A DNA stretch of 60,067 nucleotides, the filler included, from Platydemus manokwari (Eukaryota): NCBI GenBank assembly GCA_037951405.1. It is 5 parts of 5 records of this genome, joined end to end, with 100 filler letters (N's around TTAATTAATTAA, not from the genome) between each part and the next. Parts side by side here need not be neighbours in the genome. Positions count along the whole stretch, not along the records: positions 1 to 12,359 come from JBBMOY010173342.1; 4 more parts are not named here. One strand, written 5' to 3'. Below, in pieces: positions 1-12,359 of the stretch. The notes under the pieces are model-generated. The model was not told the DNA's origin. It ran no database searches and was given only the letters and a program-made list of their open reading frames with translations. Numbering within the stretch: the stretch's first letter is position 1; each line of letters opens with the position of its first letter. The position numbers and the translations under genes were made by a program.

Positions 1-3
1 ATT

Positions 4-327
4 ATGGCACATAAAACAACGAAAGAGGACCTAGTGGCATTCCTGGCAGTCCATTGCTCAGAGGATGCGGAATTGGAGAAAGAAATAAAAATGAATGATA
101 TTGTCGAATTACCGAAGATTAAGACGATAATTAAAAAGTTAGACGAACTAAGGGAGGTAAAGAGTGTGAGTGCTGTAACGTCGGATGATTGGATAACAAG
201 GCGTAAACCCAATCATAAGTCAAAGGTGCAAGTTAGGAGAATAGATACCAGAAATTGCTACAACTGTAACAAACCTGGTCACATAGCACGAAATTGTAAC
301 ACCCCAAATGGGTTACAATTACTTTAA
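4..327 (+). mobile_element. LTR-retrotransposon gag C-terminal fragment with CCHC zinc knuckle
   Basis: ORF ends in CYNCNKPGHIARNC (Cx2Cx4Hx4C) preceded by a basic linker. No pol follows and it lies at the window edge. Confidence 0.75.
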
Positions 328-1830
328 CTGTTGTATTAAAATTACCTTTGTTAGGCGCACTATTTTATAAAGAATGCGTTTAAAAAGAACTGGAAAGTCA
401 AGACATATATTGTATATATTTAACCACAATTATTTAAACAAATAAATATCCTTTGATATCAATTTATAAAATCTTTTAAATAAAAAATTTAAAATCCTGA
501 CAACATTAATTAAATTATCAGTTACAAACAATATAATTACTGTGATATTCGCATAGTAATTTTATGATTGCATTTATTGATGTTGAACGGGTATTACTTC
601 AGTAAGAATAAATTATTAATATATACTGTGTCAAAATTATATATTAAATTATACAAAATTATAATTAAAAAAGTGATATAAAAATATTTTAAAAATCCCA
701 TATCAACGCAAAGGTGTTAGTTCGTACATACAATGGAGTTCAATTAGGTGATTGCGGTATATTTAAATCAACAAGATATTAATGATGATTCAAACCCTTA
801 ATGAATAAGCATTTAGAAGCCGATAATTAATGTTTCCACCGAGGATCTGACAACTACCACGTTTGGGCCTCATTGATTTGATCATATTATTAATCTTATT
901 TCTGTTTGATATAACCATTGTCTTGATCACTCTAAAAGAGTTCTTGATTAAGGCCACGGGTGTAATCTACCTTATTTTGTATAATTGTGTGAGGCAACAG
1001 TGATATAGCTTAACTAGTCTCAATTTATATTCCATATTTGAATTCTAAAAGTCGATGACACTAACTATGATGAGCAATGATTATTGATCCCTATTTAATC
1101 AATGACTAAGACTTGTTTATTATTAAATAACAATGATACAAACTGGCTTACAAATAAAATAATAAAATAAAAATTACAAATTGATTTTAATACTCCTCGA
1201 TTCATCAAAAATTACAACAGACTTTAACAGCTCCTTGGAACAAGTACTATTTAACAGACCCTATACTCTTGGAGAAAAACCAATTACCTCCGGAATTTGA
1301 GGTGGAGCTTGATAATATGAGAACAATTATAAAATTATGGTATTGATCAATATGCATTGAATGCATAAAAACACAATTGTTATAAAAATCGATATACAAC
1401 ATCTTGCAAAGTTTAGTTTTATTAAGTTATTTTTGCAAAATCCCCTAACTAATAGATAATTAGGTGCGTGCTGCTAATATAAATAAACATCAATAAACAA
1501 TATGGTACTTTTATTGATTATAATAATTAACAAATGTACTAGCGTGATTTTTAAAGAAGCATTGTTGTGACCTCAAGAATGAAAAATCGACGGAGGGCAC
1601 TATGTTACACCTTGCTTTGATGTAAAAACTGTAGAAGTATTTGATTTTAAACTCCAACAAATTCCAATCAGACTTTGTAGAGAACGCAATTAATATTTAT
1701 TGACTAATCTCCTGTCGAAGACTAATCAGAATGAACTGATAATAAATATTTGCCTTGGTATATAATTTGAAAAATTATAAAAATTTTAATATCAAACGGA
1801 TTTTGATATTAGCTGAATTATGAATGTATA

Positions 1831-1918
1831 AATTGAAATTTGTTCTGACTGTGTTACAAAGGTTCAATTGAAATTTGTTCTGACTGTGTTACAAAGGTTC
1901 AATTGAAATTGATTCTGA
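1831..1918. repeat. 35-bp tandem duplication (2 exact copies + partial third)
   Basis: aattgaaatttgttctgactgtgttacaaaggttc at 1831 and 1866, with a partial degenerate copy at 1901. Confidence 0.95.
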
Positions 1919-4900
1919 TAGATTTCTGAATGACTTAATTAAAATCACGTGAGTCCGATTGACTCAAAATATGTGGGGAATTTTTGTGCAAATGACTGCT
2001 GATTGCTTTTAAACTGTTTCAGATTGTGAGCTTTTCTAGGAGTTTTCTATAGCAATTCTCCAAGTTACCATGGTGATTTAATATTTAAATTCGAATCACT
2101 ACACTTATACATACTGCTTCCACGACAACATGGATAAATTATGATTGCTCATTTATTTTCAAGAAGTCTTATTTTCACCGACAGTGTAATTTTATATTTG
2201 TAGAAAATTTTATATTTATTAATAATTATGCATGTTTTATTTATTATTATTATTATATGACGTAACTGTATTCATTATTCTATATCCATATTGCCAGACA
2301 TTATCTAACAGTGATATCTGAAAATTTGAACTACAGAGAATCACAGGCTCAACTAGTCAGCAGTCAAAATTAAAATTCCTAAACAACACAACAATAAATT
2401 ATCACTTAAGGTGGGATCAGTATCCAAACATGGAATACAGTGCAGAAGACAACCAAGATGACTAGCTGTCAGAAAAGTTACACAAAAGCCACAAAACAGA
2501 ATGAAGGTAATCGACTAAAAAAGATTGGCAGGTAACCGTGAAATTTAACTCTTTTTATAGACTTATTGTGTGTTCTCCCTTGATGTTCTAGAGCTTCGTT
2601 TTTCATTTGATAAATTCGTTCAAACATCAATATGTTAGCAATTCCTCTTACATTTCTCATGTCATTGGTGAATATCAATATTTGTTGCCTTCTATTGGTA
2701 TGCACCAGTCGATTATTAAAGTTTAATTAAGTAAAAGAAGGTTTTAAGTGTATGTTTGTCAGGTGACAAAATGACAACAAAAAATGCAAAATTGTGACTT
2801 AATATCCACTGGACGGATATTGGAAACCAAAACGGGATGTCTGTAATGGAGGTTTAATAATAATTTTACGTTATGAAATGCTAAAAACTTTTAAAATCGA
2901 TTGATAATTGAGTGGTGCAACGACATAAGGAAATAGAAAAATGTTATTCACGGTAGTAAAAATTGGAAAAGTTGTCCTTCTGATGAATGTTAACGCATTC
3001 TAATATCATCAAATTTATCAAAATTCTCTGGAAAACGCCGACTGTCTTACCCCCCGTGAACTGTTGAATGGTAATGTAATTATCTGAACTCTCTTTATAC
3101 ACTGTTTCACTGTACCATCGTTATGTCATTTTGATATTGCATCTCTTTATTGGGTTTCGGGGCCTATGATAATTTTTTAATCCGTTAGTAATTGCATAGA
3201 TTAATGTATAATTTTTATTATTGAATGAAATTTTAATGTAAAACTTTTTTATGAAAATTAGTGGAGATTTTGTGACCAACAGGAATATAATATAACATAA
3301 TATAATATCATATCATATCATATCGTTTAAACCCCAATTTATAATCCCCATAATTAATAAAAAACCCAACATTTTTATAATAAATTTAAAACCATTAAAA
3401 TTACCTTATAATAAATTCACTCATTAAGTCCACACATGGTGAATTTATCCATGAAATAATCAAGCCGAATAAGTCAACGGGCACAGTGAATAAAATATGA
3501 AACTAGAATAAATTAATATCCAATCATTAAATACATTAACTTGTATTTAATCGGGGAGAATTTCTCTCTGCACGATAAAATCTGGTGCATTAAACATATA
3601 TACACTGCATTAAATAAAATTAACAGAGAATATCAGTGAGTGACTCACCACCACTTATATAAGCCAGTAACCCCAATTAGCACCGTACAATAGTTTTATA
3701 AGAAGAACCAGAACGTAACATCCAAGATCATTCATTGCTGGGACCGAGATTACGATATACCCTCATATTATTTAATTTATCACACATTTTCGATTATTAA
3801 ATATCATATGACCTTAATTTTAAGTCTTCTTTCAGTTTGACAATTTTATACAACCTTTTGATAAAAGACAAAGGTCATAAATAAAGACATAAATAATTAA
3901 TACACATTCGTAAACCATAATTATTTAAAAAATGAAAAACAAATATTTATAAATTATTATTAAAATCTGGTTAAAATCACAGCGAATCAAACAGTTTTAA
4001 TTATAATATCACTGTAAATAAAAGCTAGTTTAAATTTAAATTATCAGTTATAATTGCATTGGAACTGAGATGATCAGAATTGGAAATTGGAGTTTGGAAT
4101 GCTGGAATACTGGTACATGAGGTGTTGTGAATGATTTATGTATAAACGGAATCGGAAAATGAATTTTTTTTCTATTATAAAGTTATATATAAATGATTAT
4201 ATATAAATGATTTAAGTGCAAAATATTATTTTACTAAAAATCAAACTCAAATAAAATAATGCCAGAAAATGTACTAAGATTGAAACCTAATGAGTCAAAG
4301 AAATATTTCAAACGAAAATTGATAGTCAGCGAAAAAATTACTGGCCAAAAGACTGTTTGTATCTTGTATGAGAGAATTTTAGTGTGTTTATTGATCCATC
4401 TTGATTCGATTATTATATTTTTATAATCGTTCAAATTTCAGTCAAAGTTAATTGGTTAATTCTCTTCTTTGTATTTTTGCATAAGGACATTGGTTAATTG
4501 TTATGAGTGTGTGTCGAGCTACAGTAATAGTTTAACAATGGCTGTTGATTTGAAAGCCTTAAATTGGCTGCTAGCACATGTGTTTTCTGTTCATGTGTGC
4601 ACACCATTTTTAGAACTTATTTTATCATTGCGTTACAGCAGCAAATGAGGTATAAAAAAAATACAATGAGATATATTTAATTTCGAAATATAATTGCACA
4701 ATTTTTAAAGATGTTGTTGTTAAGGCGTTTTCACCAAGAAATAATAATTGGATAAGTAAAGAATAAGAGCAATAAAATACAATCATCAATCACTATATAT
4801 AAAATGAAAATGGCAATTCAAGTTGAATAGTAAGAGAATGCAAATAACCAGAAATTGGGATTAGATTTAATTGATTTAAAATTCCGTTGTTTTCAGCTTA

Positions 4901-6308
4901 TATTTGGATATAACTGATTTTAAGCAACGATTATTATGACAGTGACCATAGAAGATCTGTGGATCCACTAGAGACTTGAAGATGGTTAGAATTAGGAACC
5001 CCGCAACTATGTATTGGAACTTATTCTATTATGAGTTTGTTGATTAAATATTGTTTGATTGAGCTGGATTTAAGCCAAATAAATTGGTAATAGCAATTAT
5101 GCGAACCACGAATACAGATTGAAAATTATTAAAATACAAAGGGAAAATTTTTGGTCTAGATTAGCAAAAATTAAACAGGAACTTTGGAAAATCTTTGCAA
5201 TGACATTACAATTATCGTGTTCAATATGAATCGATTCCTTTTTTGTGCTCAAATTTCTTTTCTTCACTTGACCTGTGAGTTCGTTATAATTTTTTAGGTG
5301 TGTTTGGATGTCTTGTTCTTCTATTCATAAGGATTGGATTTCTTTGAATTACCTTTATGGTATTATAAAATATTTTTAATACTATTTTAGGTACAAATAC
5401 TGTAGTTTACTATTTTTAGATATTTTTAATCATTTGTCATATTTAAGGATTCAATTTAATCTAATTTTATATTTAATGGTTCTTATGTGTGTCTCGTTGA
5501 AAAATTATGTTATATATCATTATTATTGTGGGGCCTATTTTTAACAACAGTTTTATTTGATAATTCTAATATTATTCATCAACTAATGAAAACCCTGACC
5601 CTAGCATTTGGTTTTTACTGAATTATCATTTGATTTTTGTAGGAAATCTTCAATTGCACCTGATAACTGTCTTCATTAATTTTATTTTGTCTAATTTTTA
5701 ATATTTGATTTGAAAAATTATTTTACTTAATTAAACTAAAAAATAAAATATCGATGTTACTATTAAAATATATTTCGGATAAATAAAATCAAAAATTGAA
5801 TCAAACAAATCATCAAATGAAATATATTTTTTTAAATAAATTAAAGATGTTGTCAAACGATATTGTTTTGGATTATTGACCTTTACATTTTGTAATTTAT
5901 CATGAGATTTACATTTATTTTTAAGAATCTTCTGACGTTTGATTTTGATTATATTTTACTAAAATTATCTGACTTCTTGTTTAGGTTTCTTAGCCATATT
6001 AACTGTGAATTTAAGTCATACTAAAACCGCACAAAAAAGAAAAGCACGCCAAATCGGAGTTAGAGGTTAAATATTTTTATTTTAATTATTAATAGAAATC
6101 CATGAATTTTAAGAATAATAAATCCACAACAAATTAAAGTTTTATTAAGATTATAAAATCAATTAGATGTTTTTGACAATTTCGAATTAATTAATTAAGT
6201 TAAAATAATTAATTCAATATTTTTTGTACCGAATTCAACTGAAAGAAGTCATTTTAATTTGTTTTTATAAACAATAATAATGCAATTGAATAACTTCGTT
6301 TTAAAAAA

Positions 6309-6905
6309 ATGGAAAATTTCGAATGTTTAATTTGTCTACGTGAAATATCGACATCGATTTGTCAACTTGTTGAATGTGCACATGAGTTCTGTCTATCATG
6401 CATTGAACAGTGGTTTAAAGATTCCAATAAATGCCCCTTAGATACACAAATCGTTACAGAATATTTTGTTTTCGATAAACCTAATGGTGAATTAATCGAA
6501 CAACGTTTGGTAACTGATCCAAATGCTATTATTATCAATGATGATATCTTCATAGAAAATGTCCAAGATTTAAATGAAATTTTAGACGAATATTTTCAAT
6601 ATGCTTCAAGTGACGATGATGACGAGAATGATGATGAAGATTATTTTTATTCGGTAGGAGGATTTATTGTGGAAGACTTTAGTAGTGATACGGATGATGT
6701 TGATGACAATTTTGATATGGGCAGTTCAGAAAATGATGCCGATAACATAGGGAATGAAGAACTGGAAGTGAAAAATTGTGAATCAATGGATGAAAGTATT
6801 GGTAGTACTGTAGAAGGAAATGAAAATACAGAAGTGATGACGGGTGGCACCAGTGATAAAGAAAAACATGCCGATTTTGATATTGACGGTCAGCAGCAGG
6901 AATAA
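6309..6905 (+). CDS. C3HC4 RING-finger protein with acidic tail (putative E3 ligase, PHRF1/SCAF11/Topors-like RING)
   Basis: CLIC...CAHEFCLSCIEQW...CPLD RING motif at the N-terminus, D/E-rich C-terminus, single 198-aa ORF. Confidence 0.8.
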   Translation: MENFECLICLREISTSICQLVECAHEFCLSCIEQWFKDSNKCPLDTQIVTEYFVFDKPNGELIEQRLVTDPNAIIINDDIFIENVQDLNEILDEYFQYASSDDDDENDDEDYFYSVGGFIVEDFSSDTDDVDDNFDMGSSENDADNIGNEELEVKNCESMDESIGSTVEGNENTEVMTGGTSDKEKHADFDIDGQQQE

Positions 6906-7510
6906 AGGAAAATTATGCATAATATAATTTAATCCTTGAATTTTATCTGTTTTATAGTTTTTATAATATCACAGTTCAGTATTGATGGCGTTTTTTAAGG
7001 TGTTCCCATGATTTATAAATTAGGATACTCGTACCCACCAAAAATCTTACTCTTAGCAGTTAATTAAGTTGCATGTTAAATACGAATAGGATATCGAGTA
7101 ACAAGTCAAATGTGCAAATAGTGTTGTGAATGAGGACATTGTTGGGCAGAAAATACTGGCCACATGAAGTATGTGAATCCCGATTATAATCAAATAGAAG
7201 ATTTACGGCGAAGTATAGTATAAAATAAGACTGAAGACGAAAATTCTTCGTGTACAGTAAGGATAAGCATCTGCATGGTAAATATTCAATTTCTGTGAAA
7301 TTTCATCAATTTTTAAAAATATAAATTTAATTTAGATGGTATCAATGGGAAAATAGAATAGTAATCAATATTGAGCCGAGAAAGAAATATAGCGACTCTA
7401 AGACTAGTTTGAATAAATAAATCTTGTTTTTTAGTCTTGTTTTTTATATATAAGCATTCTTAGTTTTCTATTAGTGGTGAACATTCCTCCAAAATTCTGT
7501 TATCTTACAA

Positions 7511-7840
7511 CCAATGTTTCCTCTAATTTTGGCAATTTAATATGCGCAATATTTGGTGCTGTGCAAAGTATGACAAACGGAAATTAATTGTGTGCACTGT
7601 GCACACAAGAATGAGCATAAGACAAGAAAATAATTTATTCATTTTATAGACTGTTTATTTCTTTACAAGGCTAATAGCAGGGATACAATAAATTGTTGGA
7701 GATGATATTATAAACTACAATCAAATTATTACTTAAAGAACCGTGGGTTTGACTTTCTCACTCCAGTACTTTGTTCTTAGTAAGAAACTTTTGTGAGCTG
7801 ACGTTTTACAACTGTGCACACCTGTTTCGTCCAACTAATT
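7511..7840 (-). mobile_element. Non-autonomous hAT derivative (MITE-like)
   Basis: Reverse complement matches both ends of the hAT copy at 38.6-39.5 kb (e.g. aaaacgtcagctcacaaaagtttcttactaagaacaaagtact vs 38694; aaaattagaggaaacattggt vs 39496) and lacks the transposase part. Confidence 0.7.
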
Positions 7841-8204
7841 ATTTAAAAATGATGTTTATTCATTGATATATCACATATATTGAATCACTAATTATTATCA
7901 TAGTATATATATAAAATGTTATTGCTCTCAAATAGTTTTAAAGAGGCATACAAATATCACATCAACAATATTAATTAACTCAATAACCTAAGCTTTTACA
8001 TGACACAAGTATTGATTATAGTAAAAAAAAATGCATAATAACCACAATAAAACAAAGCTTAAACAACATTTATTGATTAATCCAATAATCGAATAATCCA
8101 ATTCAATAAAATAGAAACAAAAAGCCAATCATATAAAAATCAATATTTGTATTAAATGCAAAGAAGCGTTAAAAAATGATGAGGAAAAAATCCCCACAAG
8201 ATAA

Positions 8205-10446
8205 TTAAACAAGAAAGCTATTGCTGTTATCAGTTTCTGGATCTAAATTATTGAAATTCAATGCAGGAATCATGCTTCTCCTGGTAGTTGGCAAGATATT
8301 TTCTGTGTTGATATCACTGGTGATGTGATCGAATAAATTGGATTTCTTTCGAGTTGATGATATGATTCCATTGTTGTCATGGTTACCAGATGATATTTGA
8401 TTGGTCGATATTCCTGTTGCAGTTCCTGAGGTCAAATTATCAGAATTTGTGTCAAGATCGTCGAATAATTTCTTCTGAATGGATTTTCTCGCAACATTTT
8501 TACCAGTTTCATTATTATTCAAATATGACGGAAGTGGTGAAAGATTCGAATATAATTTTTCATGCCCATAACCACTGGATTTAATGAAATCTTGAGTATC
8601 CATATAAACGGTATCTTCACAGAAATATTGAGCTGGTTGACTGCCCAAGAAAGATCTCTGCTTGATTTTTGGCGAAAGCAAAATCGATGATGATGATTGC
8701 GATGTGTGTCGATTAACATGAGATTTTCGGACTTTTCTCTGTGCTGGTATTGGTGATTTTAAACATGATTTCAAAGGCGTTTTCGGGCTGCTTGTTTCAA
8801 TAACGGTGATCGATGGTGATAAATTGAAACGATTGTGAGATTTGATTGGTGAAAACAAATTCATTCGACGTGGGGACATTGTTTTCATTTGTTTGTGAGG
8901 TGATTTCAAATCGATATATTTATCATCAGCTGCTTTGACAGGACTGAAAAATGGGCGACATCTCTTCTTTGGTGTTTGTTTATTGGGAGTTCCGATTGAT
9001 TGGTTGACAACATCAATTGAATTTGATTGGTCCAAATTATCACACTGTTTGATTGGCGAATTAAATGCATCAAATAATCGCGATTGAAATCTCGTTGTCG
9101 GTATGGACGAAAAACTGATCGATTCATGAGATTCATTGGAAAATTGTGTCAGTGATCTTTCTTGATTTTCTTGTGCTTGAACCCAATAATCACATTTGCT
9201 GATGGGATTCGATCGTTTACGTAATTGGTTATCCGTTTTTGCAAGAGCCCGTCGCAATTTGCGTTGCATTGTTGGCGTACTGGGAGTGGATCGATTGGGA
9301 ATCGGGGAATTCTTAATGACAATCACTCGTCCATCGAGTTTCTTTTGGGCAGCCAACGCTGCTCGTGCATGTCGTGGACCGGATATGCGCTTGTAATTCG
9401 GTGTTTCCGGTACGAGACTTTTCCGTTTCGTGGATTCCGGCTTTTCTTTTTTCTTTGAATTGGATTTTCGTTTTTCGGGTTTCATTGAGATGAGAGATTT
9501 TCTGGTCGGTTTAATGGTTCGATTGTTGGCCAGCGACGTACCATACTCGAATACCATTCGAATATTTGCTCTAATTGTGTTCATTAATAAATAATACGAT
9601 CAAAATATACATATATATAATCACTTTTCTTCAGATTCAAGTCTTTTTAAATCAATTAGACTATGTCGTTTTTTGGCCTTAGATTTCTCGGTGCATTCTT
9701 TAATGTCGAAGCTCAAATACGATTCATCCGGTTCTTCTTCAACTCCAATGCCATCTGGTGATAATTCCGGTGGAAGATCAAGACCAATCATTTCATAAAT
9801 TTCAATTAAAACTGGTGAAAGCGTTTCATGGAAACTGATTTGAAAATTTTTATGGAAATATTTAATTAATTAAAATTAAACCTTAAAATAAAATTTTGCA
9901 TGAAAATCTTCCAATCGGTAATTTCCATCGTTATATTGAGAGTTGAAACAATATCGAATAACTTAACAACAATATAATTTTATTCGATTATTTTTCATTT
10001 ATAATTTGTATTACCCATGCTGTGAATTCTTCTTTAATCGTACCACTGAGTTCATAAGAAAAGTTTGACACCAGAAATGAATAAAATGATAAAAAGAAAC
10101 CTGCTTGATAAGCTAAACTAAAGTGTGGATGATATTTGTATGATAAAAACCATTAAATTTTACACTTTCACTATCAAATCGTCATCATATTTGTCCGTTA
10201 TTTCTGTTGATGTTAAACTAAAGTTATCGGTGGTGAACTTTATTAACTCATTAATATCTATATCCTAGTTCAAAATAAAATAATCAAAACTAATTTTTAT
10301 TAAATTACTTTTGGATTGTAAGTGAGGTAAGTTAGATCGTCGAATAGATTTTTACACGAATCTTTCAAATTGAAATATGAATACTCCACATTCATCAGTT
10401 GATCTTGTTTTGAGGTAAAGTCAATTTTCAATTTATCCCAATCCAT
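8205..10446 (-). CDS. TICRR: Treslin/TICRR (Sld3)-like replication initiation factor, 6 exons, 665 aa
   Basis: Exons 10446-10309, 10264-10164, 10117-10015, 9961-9882, 9834-9625, 9570-8205 with GT-AG introns of 44-54 nt join to 1998 nt in frame. The N-terminal part resembles the Sld3-Treslin domain (DFTSKQDQLMNVEYSY; DIVSTLNI...FMQNFILSFHETLSPVLIEIYEMIGLDLPPEL). Paired CDK sites VPETP and IKNSP are 32 residues apart, as for human T969/S1001. S/TP-rich disordered tail. Confidence 0.7.
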
Positions 10447-12359
10447 TATTTAAATTTAAATATTAAAAAAAAATCAAAAAATTAAAATATCATTAAATTA
10501 ACATATTAATTAAACAAATATTTAATCCCTATGTTTTAAATTGAAACTATCATAAACTTGTAAGGAATTATTCATATATTAAATAATTAAAAAAATTAAA
10601 TTAACTTAATAGTGTAACACGTTTTCATAGCATTTCTTAATTTTCATATAAGTTTAAATTTGAAAATTTCTAATAAACCAAATATTAATAATATTCTAAA
10701 TTTATAGATAGAATAATTGAATACAAAATACGATTACATATTTTTAGAAATATACAAAACTGCATGAAAAAGAAATTCAATCATCTAGTTTTTGATTTTT
10801 AATTAATTGTACCCTTTAATTAATTTAACGGCATCTATTTTCTATACTACTATTGATTTATTTATTCCTTGTGATTTGATGTATCGTTTGTTTGTTTATT
10901 TGTTTTCCGGTTTCTTCTTTCGTACATGACGTTAGAAACTACTGAATTTTTAAGCAATTTTTATATTCTTTAAGATTATAGTATTTGTTACACCTAATCA
11001 AATATCATATCATATCTTTTTGTAATTGTTAAGATTAATGCTATTTTACGTGGTTCACTCTATTAATTTTACTCTTCACGATTGAATATTCAATATTATT
11101 CAATACATCACACAAAAATTTTAATTTGACAAATAATAAATGACAAATAAAAATGTGTTGTCATTAAAGTGCTACAGAATTCTTAATCACAAAAATTGTC
11201 AACAAATCAGGGTTTGGACTGGATTTTATAGTGTGTTTAGTCAGAGTTGTTTTTACTAAAACTTTGGTAAATACAAAAATTTCGGTATTCAAGCGTTTTC
11301 ATTTATTCCTCATATTTTTGGAATATCTTAGTTGGTCTGTTGAGTCTTCTACTGTCTTGTGTCTGTTTGTGTGTTTGAGATAAATACTTACAATTTAACA
11401 TGTTTCTGATTCAACGATATCCATAATTTCACATATATGTATATGTTTGAAATTAAAATGGTATTTTTAAGGTTCCGGGGTGAAAAGGATCATTAATTTT
11501 CTTGGGAATATGTTAATTTAATAAGTTTTCAAATTTATAATAATTTTTAATTAATCAATTAAAACTTGAAATATTGATTGCTATTTCCTGATCAATAGGA
11601 GACTTTTTTGCTATTCTAGGATTATATAAACTAAAATTTATTTAAGCATAAGCATAAGTGTCTTCACGACGCGGGAGGTTTTCCTAGGTAGATTTGCCTC
11701 ATTTCTTATAAGCTTTTGAGAGTTGATGTTGTTTTTTTTGGTGATTTGTTATTGATTAGAAAGAGCCCATGACGAATTTTTCATCTTTCTTAAGTCGTTA
11801 TGAGCTTAGTACGTTTAGAAGGCGCCCCTCAGTAAGGCGGTAATTAAAAAACCAGGTATAAAGGTGATTTATCCAGACTGATATTTAATAGGACTTCTTT
11901 GTTCGTTTTGGGGTTGCTGGTTTTGATTTTTATCAGTCTCTATATTTAATTAGTTTACGGATCAGTGCTGACTTGATCAGTCTCCATGAGCTCTGACCAA
12001 CCCCTTAAGGTATACGAATTAAACCCTAATTTATTATCTTCTTTTTACACTTCGCTATCAATACTATATGGAGATAGTATGATAGGCAGCAAAGATCCAA
12101 TTGTTAACTTTATTAAAACTATTTTACAAGTCAGTCTCAATTACAATCAGTCTCAAATTATTCAATAATCCTATCCTATATCCTATTTGATCAACAACAC
12201 ATTGCTTTCGTTTACGATAACGTTTATTGATGATACAATGATTACAATTATACAACAATAACAATTTAATGGTTAAAACTATAGTATACAATTAATACAA
12301 TAACCTAAACGAATGACCTTACAAATTCAGGAAGTTCACGGTTACTTGTTTCAACTCGA

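Follow-up and report, generated by a model that had tools for sequence, protein, structure and literature searches.

A candidate reduced Treslin/Sld3-type origin-firing adaptor encoded by a compact six-exon gene of Platydemus manokwari

The DNA analysed here (the window) is a stretch of 60,067 nucleotides, filler included, made of 5 parts of 5 records of the Platydemus manokwari genome (GenBank assembly GCA_037951405.1); positions 1 to 12,359 come from JBBMOY010173342.1. This first part holds, on the minus strand at 10446..8205, a six-exon gene whose 665-aa product is a candidate for a reduced form of the origin-firing adaptor Treslin/Sld3. An initial reading made without database searches (hereafter the sequence-only reading) had described a clean open reading frame (ORF) of 6 exons and 665 aa at this locus. 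We found that this description holds, as the spliced frame is open over 665 codons and the exons join in frame through five introns, all of them GT-AG and 44-54 nt long. An in-frame TAA is present at 10452-10450, two codons 5' of the ATG. The surrounding DNA is ~29% GC overall with introns of ~50 nt, and the GC content of the introns is 13-24% against 26-38% for the exons; exon 2, for instance, has a GC fraction of 0.29 compared to 0.14-0.24 in the introns on either side. At the local stop-codon density the chance of the last exon (455 codons) staying open is ~1e-19, and that of exon 5 is ~1e-3. In the sole public run that holds this DNA the region 7766-10489 was recovered as one contig without differences at a depth of ~17. 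A search for public RNA runs returned only one DNA run and none of RNA. Since the spliced frame is cleanly open, the GC content steps between exon and intron and the contig depth is ~17, the gene is real-looking and single-copy. On the same single-copy depth the reading as a transposon gene was rejected.

The encoded protein has an ordered N-terminal part followed by a long disordered part. Residues 1-160 are hydrophobic, ordered by composition and apparently helical. When exon 1 was modelled alone with AlphaFold it was predicted to form a single helix spanning residues 3-43, with a mean predicted local distance difference test score (pLDDT) of 94. After residue ~160 there follow, in order, an acidic linker, a basic segment, two S/T-P sites, a helix pair and an unstructured tail. 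The basic stretch within exon 5 carries the motif K-R-L at residues 204-206. The sequence-only reading had taken the last exon for anonymous low-complexity protein, and consistent with this AlphaFold gave a pLDDT below 50 for 378 of the 454 residues encoded by exon 6; the helix pair at ~310-356 is the only confidently predicted element of this exon (10-residue blocks with pLDDT up to 86). The positions of these elements are collected in Table 1.

Table 1. Exons of the candidate gene and elements of its product, with window coordinates.
Feature	Positions	Strand	Residues and remarks
Exon 1	10309..10446	-	residues 1-46; ATG 10446-10444
Exon 2	10164..10264	-	residues 47-80, final codon split; AG acceptor and GT donor in frame
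Exon 3	10015..10117	-	residues 80-114; holds the most hydrophobic helix-like stretch
Exon 4	9882..9961	-	residues 115-141, final codon split
Exon 5	9625..9834	-	residues 141-211; end of the ordered N-terminal region (~residue 160), acidic linker, basic stretch
Exon 6	8205..9570	-	residues 211-665 and TAA stop 8207-8205; mostly disordered, rich in CDK (cyclin-dependent kinase) sites
Strongly basic stretch	9417..9497	-	residues 236-262, immediately N-terminal of the first CDK site
TDIN-like module	9288..9425	-	residues 260-305; contains T267 and S299
Predicted helix pair	9135..9275	-	residues ~310-330 and 336-356, just C-terminal of the CDK pair
AATAAA polyadenylation-type signal	8069..8074	-	~130 nt 3' of the stop codon

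We found that potential sites for cyclin-dependent kinase (CDK) are strongly over-represented in the protein. The whole protein contains 19 S/T-P sites where 7.5 are expected from composition, and eight full CDK sites of the form [ST]-P-x-[KR] where 1.06 are expected; none of 20,000 shuffles reached either count. Judged from sequence, a disordered region so rich in S/T-P and full CDK sites is typical of multi-site CDK substrates.

The two S/T-P sites that come first C-terminal of the ordered region, after the basic stretch, are T267 (codon 9404-9402), in the context S-L-V-P-E-T-P, and S299 (codon 9308-9306), in the context I-V-I-K-N-S-P. The sequence-only reading had pointed to VPETP and IKNSP as lying exactly 32 aa apart, and we located both sites at exactly this spacing. 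We compared them, at the level of motifs and with short published peptides as references, to the TDIN of Treslin. The phosphopeptides of human Treslin are LTKSVAEpTPVHKQIS and DIGVVEEpSPEKGDEI, and the TOPBP1/Rad4 consensus is [FILMV]3-x-x-[ST]-P for BRCT1 and [FILMV]-x-x-[ST]-P for BRCT2 (PMC6175577). Residues 260-274 share 7 of the 15 residues of the human pT969 peptide (V at -3, E at -1, T, P, K at +4, I at +6 and S at +7), with a BLOSUM62 score of 28, and are the best match to this peptide in the whole protein, anchored on T267. With V at -3, T267 satisfies the BRCT2 consensus. S299 has I-V-I at -5 to -3 and satisfies the BRCT1 consensus, and it is the sole BRCT1-type site in the protein. 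The order of the sites, a BRCT2-preferring site and then a BRCT1-capable one, agrees with that in Treslin of human (T969/S1001) and Xenopus (T944/S976). At the level of motifs the earlier proposal of Treslin-like CDK sites is supported by their sequence context, their order, their spacing and their agreement with both BRCT consensus motifs; the spacing of 32 is weak when taken alone, because the 17 S/T-P sites of the tail make it not rare for some pair to fall 32 apart. It is the sequence context of both sites that makes the match better than chance.

We then scored a composite in which an anchored pT969-like site is followed 14-60 residues later by a BRCT1-type site. In shuffles that preserve the S/T-P sites this composite arose at 4e-4 per protein, and at a spacing of exactly 32 it arose in none of 30,000. 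From 210 million random residues, 0.13-0.2 composites are expected per 7 million residues (about one proteome), and none was found at exactly 32. This suggests good but not decisive support for Treslin, because the motif criteria were partly set post hoc and a random-sequence null understates the false positives among real CDK substrates.

The candidate is laid out like Treslin: its helical domain, basic linker, CDK pair and long tail come in the same sequence as the Sld3-Treslin domain (STD), the TDIN and the C-terminal region. We consider that the protein most likely acts like Treslin/Sld3, as a CDK-switched adaptor that would dock on BRCT1 and BRCT2 of TopBP1, and we stop short of listing it among the established members of the family. 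That the gene is the Treslin/Sld3 of this lineage seems to us somewhat probable; for the narrower statement that it encodes a Treslin/Sld3-type origin-firing adaptor in the reduced, minimal form modelled here the balance is even. Narrower still, and tentative, is the suggestion that it is a truly minimal animal-type Treslin, with a short helical Cdc45-binding domain, a TDIN of vertebrate-like spacing and a CDK-rich tail, from which the vWA domain and the Ku70-like beta-barrel have been lost.

Under such a model T267 and S299 would be phosphorylated by S-phase CDK, and the phosphorylated pair would then dock on the N-terminal BRCT repeats of the orthologue of TopBP1/Dpb11: the hydrophobic triplet of S299 suits BRCT1, and T267 suits BRCT2. 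The N-terminal helical domain would carry Cdc45, which docking would thereby deliver to licensed MCM double hexamers. Both the vWA (CIT) domain and the MTBP/Sld7-binding Ku70-like beta-barrel are apparently absent, and any dimerisation or coupling to MTBP would be done differently or have been lost. Loss of MTBP in this lineage is a prediction of the model.

Among known systems the candidate can be set beside vertebrate Treslin/TICRR. The CDK sites of the human and Xenopus proteins are likewise 32 residues apart, the first site of human Treslin (962-976) shares the context V-x-E-T-P-x-x-K-x-I-S, and the second site in vertebrates also has hydrophobic residues at -3 and -4. In both a helical domain lies N-terminal of the pair and a long disordered region follows it, although the homology of the helical domain here to the STD is putative. 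The differences lie in size and in the N-terminal domains. Vertebrate Treslin is ~1,900 aa in length compared to 665 aa here, ~180 residues separate the ordered region from the first site in human Treslin against ~100 here, and the candidate has no room for either the CIT/vWA domain or the M domain, the Ku70-like beta-barrel that binds MTBP. Human cells require this MTBP-binding M domain, and replication in them is not sustained by the Sld3-like core on its own.

Another parallel is SLD-3 of C. elegans (ZK484.4), a reduced metazoan Sld3/Treslin that combines a Cdc45-binding domain, two CDK sites and a long C-terminal region, as proposed for the candidate. Both of its CDK sites are essential and bind MUS-101/TopBP1, and no MTBP/Sld7 orthologue has been found (PMC7771872). 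SLD-3 differs in being 873 aa long and in carrying ~150 residues before its Sld3-Treslin domain (151-388), whereas the ordered region here begins at residue 1 and extends over ~160 aa. Yeast Sld3 is similar in overall size (the S. pombe sites are at 636 and 650) and also has a BRCT1-type and BRCT2-type S/T-P pair, which in yeasts docks on Dpb11/Rad4. In contrast to the candidate, in which the sites at 267/299 are followed by a 366-residue tail, the CDK pair of yeast Sld3 is near the C-terminus, and in S. cerevisiae Sld7 is bound by an N-terminal beta-barrel of Sld3. For S. pombe Sld3 no such Sld7 partner has been found.

Several points weigh against assigning the protein to the Treslin/Sld3 family. 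The spacing of the CDK sites is not constant among accepted members, being 49 in C. elegans SLD-3 (T438/T487), 22 in S. cerevisiae and 14 in S. pombe. The context of S299 is unlike the human pS1001 peptide by BLOSUM (score 9). A pT969-like score of at least 28 arises by itself in ~1% of tail shuffles, and a BRCT1-type and BRCT2-type pair 14-60 apart arises in 12% of S/T-P-preserving shuffles. At ~160 residues the ordered region falls short of the Cdc45-binding region of SLD-3 in C. elegans. Evidence linking the N-terminal region to the Sld3-Treslin domain was not found at profile, sequence or fold level, with exons searched singly as pieces of 26-70 aa that give little power. On the same short pieces, exons 1-5 taken one by one gave no Pfam match at E up to 10, vWA included, and no meaningful match against PDB; exon 5 also returned nothing from the ESM Atlas. 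The helix predicted for exon 1 is compatible with the Sld3-Treslin domain but is not specific to that domain. The sequence-only reading had likened the first ~200 aa to the Sld3 core; this putative resemblance gained no support from the searches, which do not count against it either.

The larger disordered part was equally without relatives. Exon 6 (454 aa) had no match in Pfam, a word-index protein database, 1.84 billion representatives or PDB sequences, and none in JGI metagenome contigs or the ESM Atlas. Word searching was repeated for the TDIN region alone at E up to 10, again without a match, and no record in public assemblies matched the exon-6 ORF exactly. No relatives in which to compare the CDK sites were found for any searched part. 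The neighbouring gene allows this blank to be put in proportion. An ORF of 198 aa in a single exon at 6309-6905 (+) has a RING finger at its N-terminus (Pfam zf-RING_2, E 1e-8) and a tail that is long and acidic, with C-P-L-D at the final zinc-ligand position instead of C-P-x-C, and a word search with it was likewise without relatives. Rfam gave no match either. Because this RING ORF is equally blank the lineage is poorly covered, and little can therefore be read from the missing relatives of the candidate about how old the gene is.

The strongest alternative is a protein without homology to Treslin/Sld3, namely a nuclear multi-site CDK substrate that is lineage-specific or evolves fast, in which the TDIN-like pair is a chance occurrence or a convergent TopBP1-type docking motif. 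We regard this as doubtful, though it has points in its favour. Neither the word-index searches nor the 1.84 billion representatives yielded a homologue for any part, there were no family matches, and the frequency of BRCT-type pairs in shuffles given above fits such a protein. Motifs of the form [FILMV]-x-x-[ST]-P occur in several unrelated TOPBP1/Rad4 ligands: RHNO1, Crb2 and Mdb1 all bind BRCT1,2 through [FILMV]-x-x-[ST]-P or hydrophobic-triplet phospho-motifs. These three proteins have other architectures and roles in DNA damage signalling, however, and none of them has pT969-like flanks or a 32-residue spacing. A further hint at a different partner is a fivefold L-F-D motif, described below. 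Against these points stand the full composite of context, partner, order and spacing, which is expected well under once per proteome, and the domain layout, which matches the STD, TDIN and C-terminus order of Treslin.

A second alternative accepts the gene as a Treslin orthologue and holds that 5' exons are missing from the model, so that the vWA domain and beta-barrel would be encoded past the repeat that ends the piece, or by another gene, and the protein would not be truly minimal. Only 266 residues lie N-terminal of the first CDK site, compared to 968 in human Treslin, where the stretch before T969 comprises the vWA domain, the Ku70-like beta-barrel (299-424) and the STD (PMC8807876). In favour of this alternative, the 5' end of the model is predicted from DNA, the piece stops 1.9 kb upstream in a very high-copy repeat (11833-12359), and AG dinucleotides within exon 1 (10404, 10384 and 10362) are possible acceptors in principle. 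However, the 1.9 kb 5' of the ATG has 24% GC, ~9% stop codons in every frame and a longest open stretch of 55 codons, and nothing in it could plausibly encode a vWA domain or a Ku70-like beta-barrel. Exon 1 is predicted as a continuous and confident helix from its first residues, and a first intron of more than 1.9 kb would be out of character beside five introns of 44-54 nt. Missing 5' exons are unlikely, because an in-frame stop lies just 5' of the ATG and the introns are ~50 nt throughout.

The claim of the sequence-only reading that the protein lacks the MTBP-binding and N-terminal domains therefore stands up for the model as drawn, given the 266 residues before T267, the helical exon 1 and the blank 1.9 kb upstream. 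In place of an M domain or Ku70-like barrel there are ~160 ordered residues starting with a 41-residue helix. The N-terminal CIT/vWA region of metazoan and plant Treslin was not seen either, as the start is helical, the upstream DNA is blank and no exon has a vWA match in Pfam.

That the frame is non-functional, as a chance ORF or a decaying pseudogene, is highly improbable: expression data and homologues were both sought and none found, but a 455-codon open exon, five more open exons joined in frame by canonical short introns with a clear exon/intron GC step, and a non-random enrichment of the CDK consensus that argues for selection all stand against it.

If the reading as a truly minimal Treslin is correct, origin firing in this lineage would proceed without the Treslin-MTBP heterotetramer, and the long N-terminal helix or the repeated L-F-D motifs might take on dimerisation or partner recruitment. 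A natural Treslin consisting of the helical domain and the TDIN would reveal what the origin-firing hub can lose in evolution, and so compact a protein would suit structural work on the contacts with Cdc45 and TopBP1. A reduced Treslin would also help to trace 'missing' orthologues in lineages without an annotated Treslin; for Drosophila, the literature states that no Treslin orthologue has been found so far. The weight of the case is limited in two respects. C. elegans and S. pombe already provide reduced Sld3/Treslin forms for which no Sld7/MTBP partner is known, and the identification depends on a short motif module.

Other features of the protein were recorded. The tripeptide L-F-D occurs at residues 34, 115, 376, 579 and 623, in exons 1, 4 and 6, which is five copies where 0.18 are expected and a count reached in none of 20,000 shuffles. 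Two of the copies belong to near-identical K-x-L-F-D-D-L heptads at residues 32-38 and 577-583, and the second heptad falls in a predicted short helix of the disordered tail. From their sequence the L-F-D copies may be a repeated docking motif. A match to the destruction box (D-box) of the anaphase-promoting complex/cyclosome (APC/C), RxxLxxxxN at residue 317, was rejected: the helix that contains it is predicted with confidence, and 18% of shuffles are expected to carry a match of this kind. We also rejected a transmembrane protein: the top 19-residue stretch, within residues 76-100, has a Kyte-Doolittle value of ~1.4 when computed by hand, below the usual threshold of 1.6, and amphipathic helices surround it.

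The DNA around the gene contains several repeated elements. Repeats at 7537-7894 and 11833-12359 bracket the gene and are present in many variant copies, with summed contig depths of ~2,100 and ~27,000, respectively, against ~17 for the gene. Just upstream of the ATG is an inverted repeat of 52 nt, 75% complementary, with arms at 10456-10507 and 11507-11558 that are 999 nt apart. In one contig of the public run 10487 is followed directly by 11554, so that 1066 nt with TA at either end are left out. The inverted repeat and this joint could be a polymorphic insertion in the promoter, of the terminal inverted repeat (TIR) or miniature inverted-repeat transposable element (MITE) type; the joint may also be spurious, its supporting flank being 21 nt in AT-rich DNA. 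Further away an ORF at 4-327 (+), cut by the edge of the piece, has a CCHC zinc knuckle (Pfam zf-CCHC, E 8e-7) and is probably a remnant of a retrotransposon Gag. Finally, a perfect tandem repeat with a 35-nt unit in 2.5 copies is present at 1831-1918, in non-coding AT-rich DNA.
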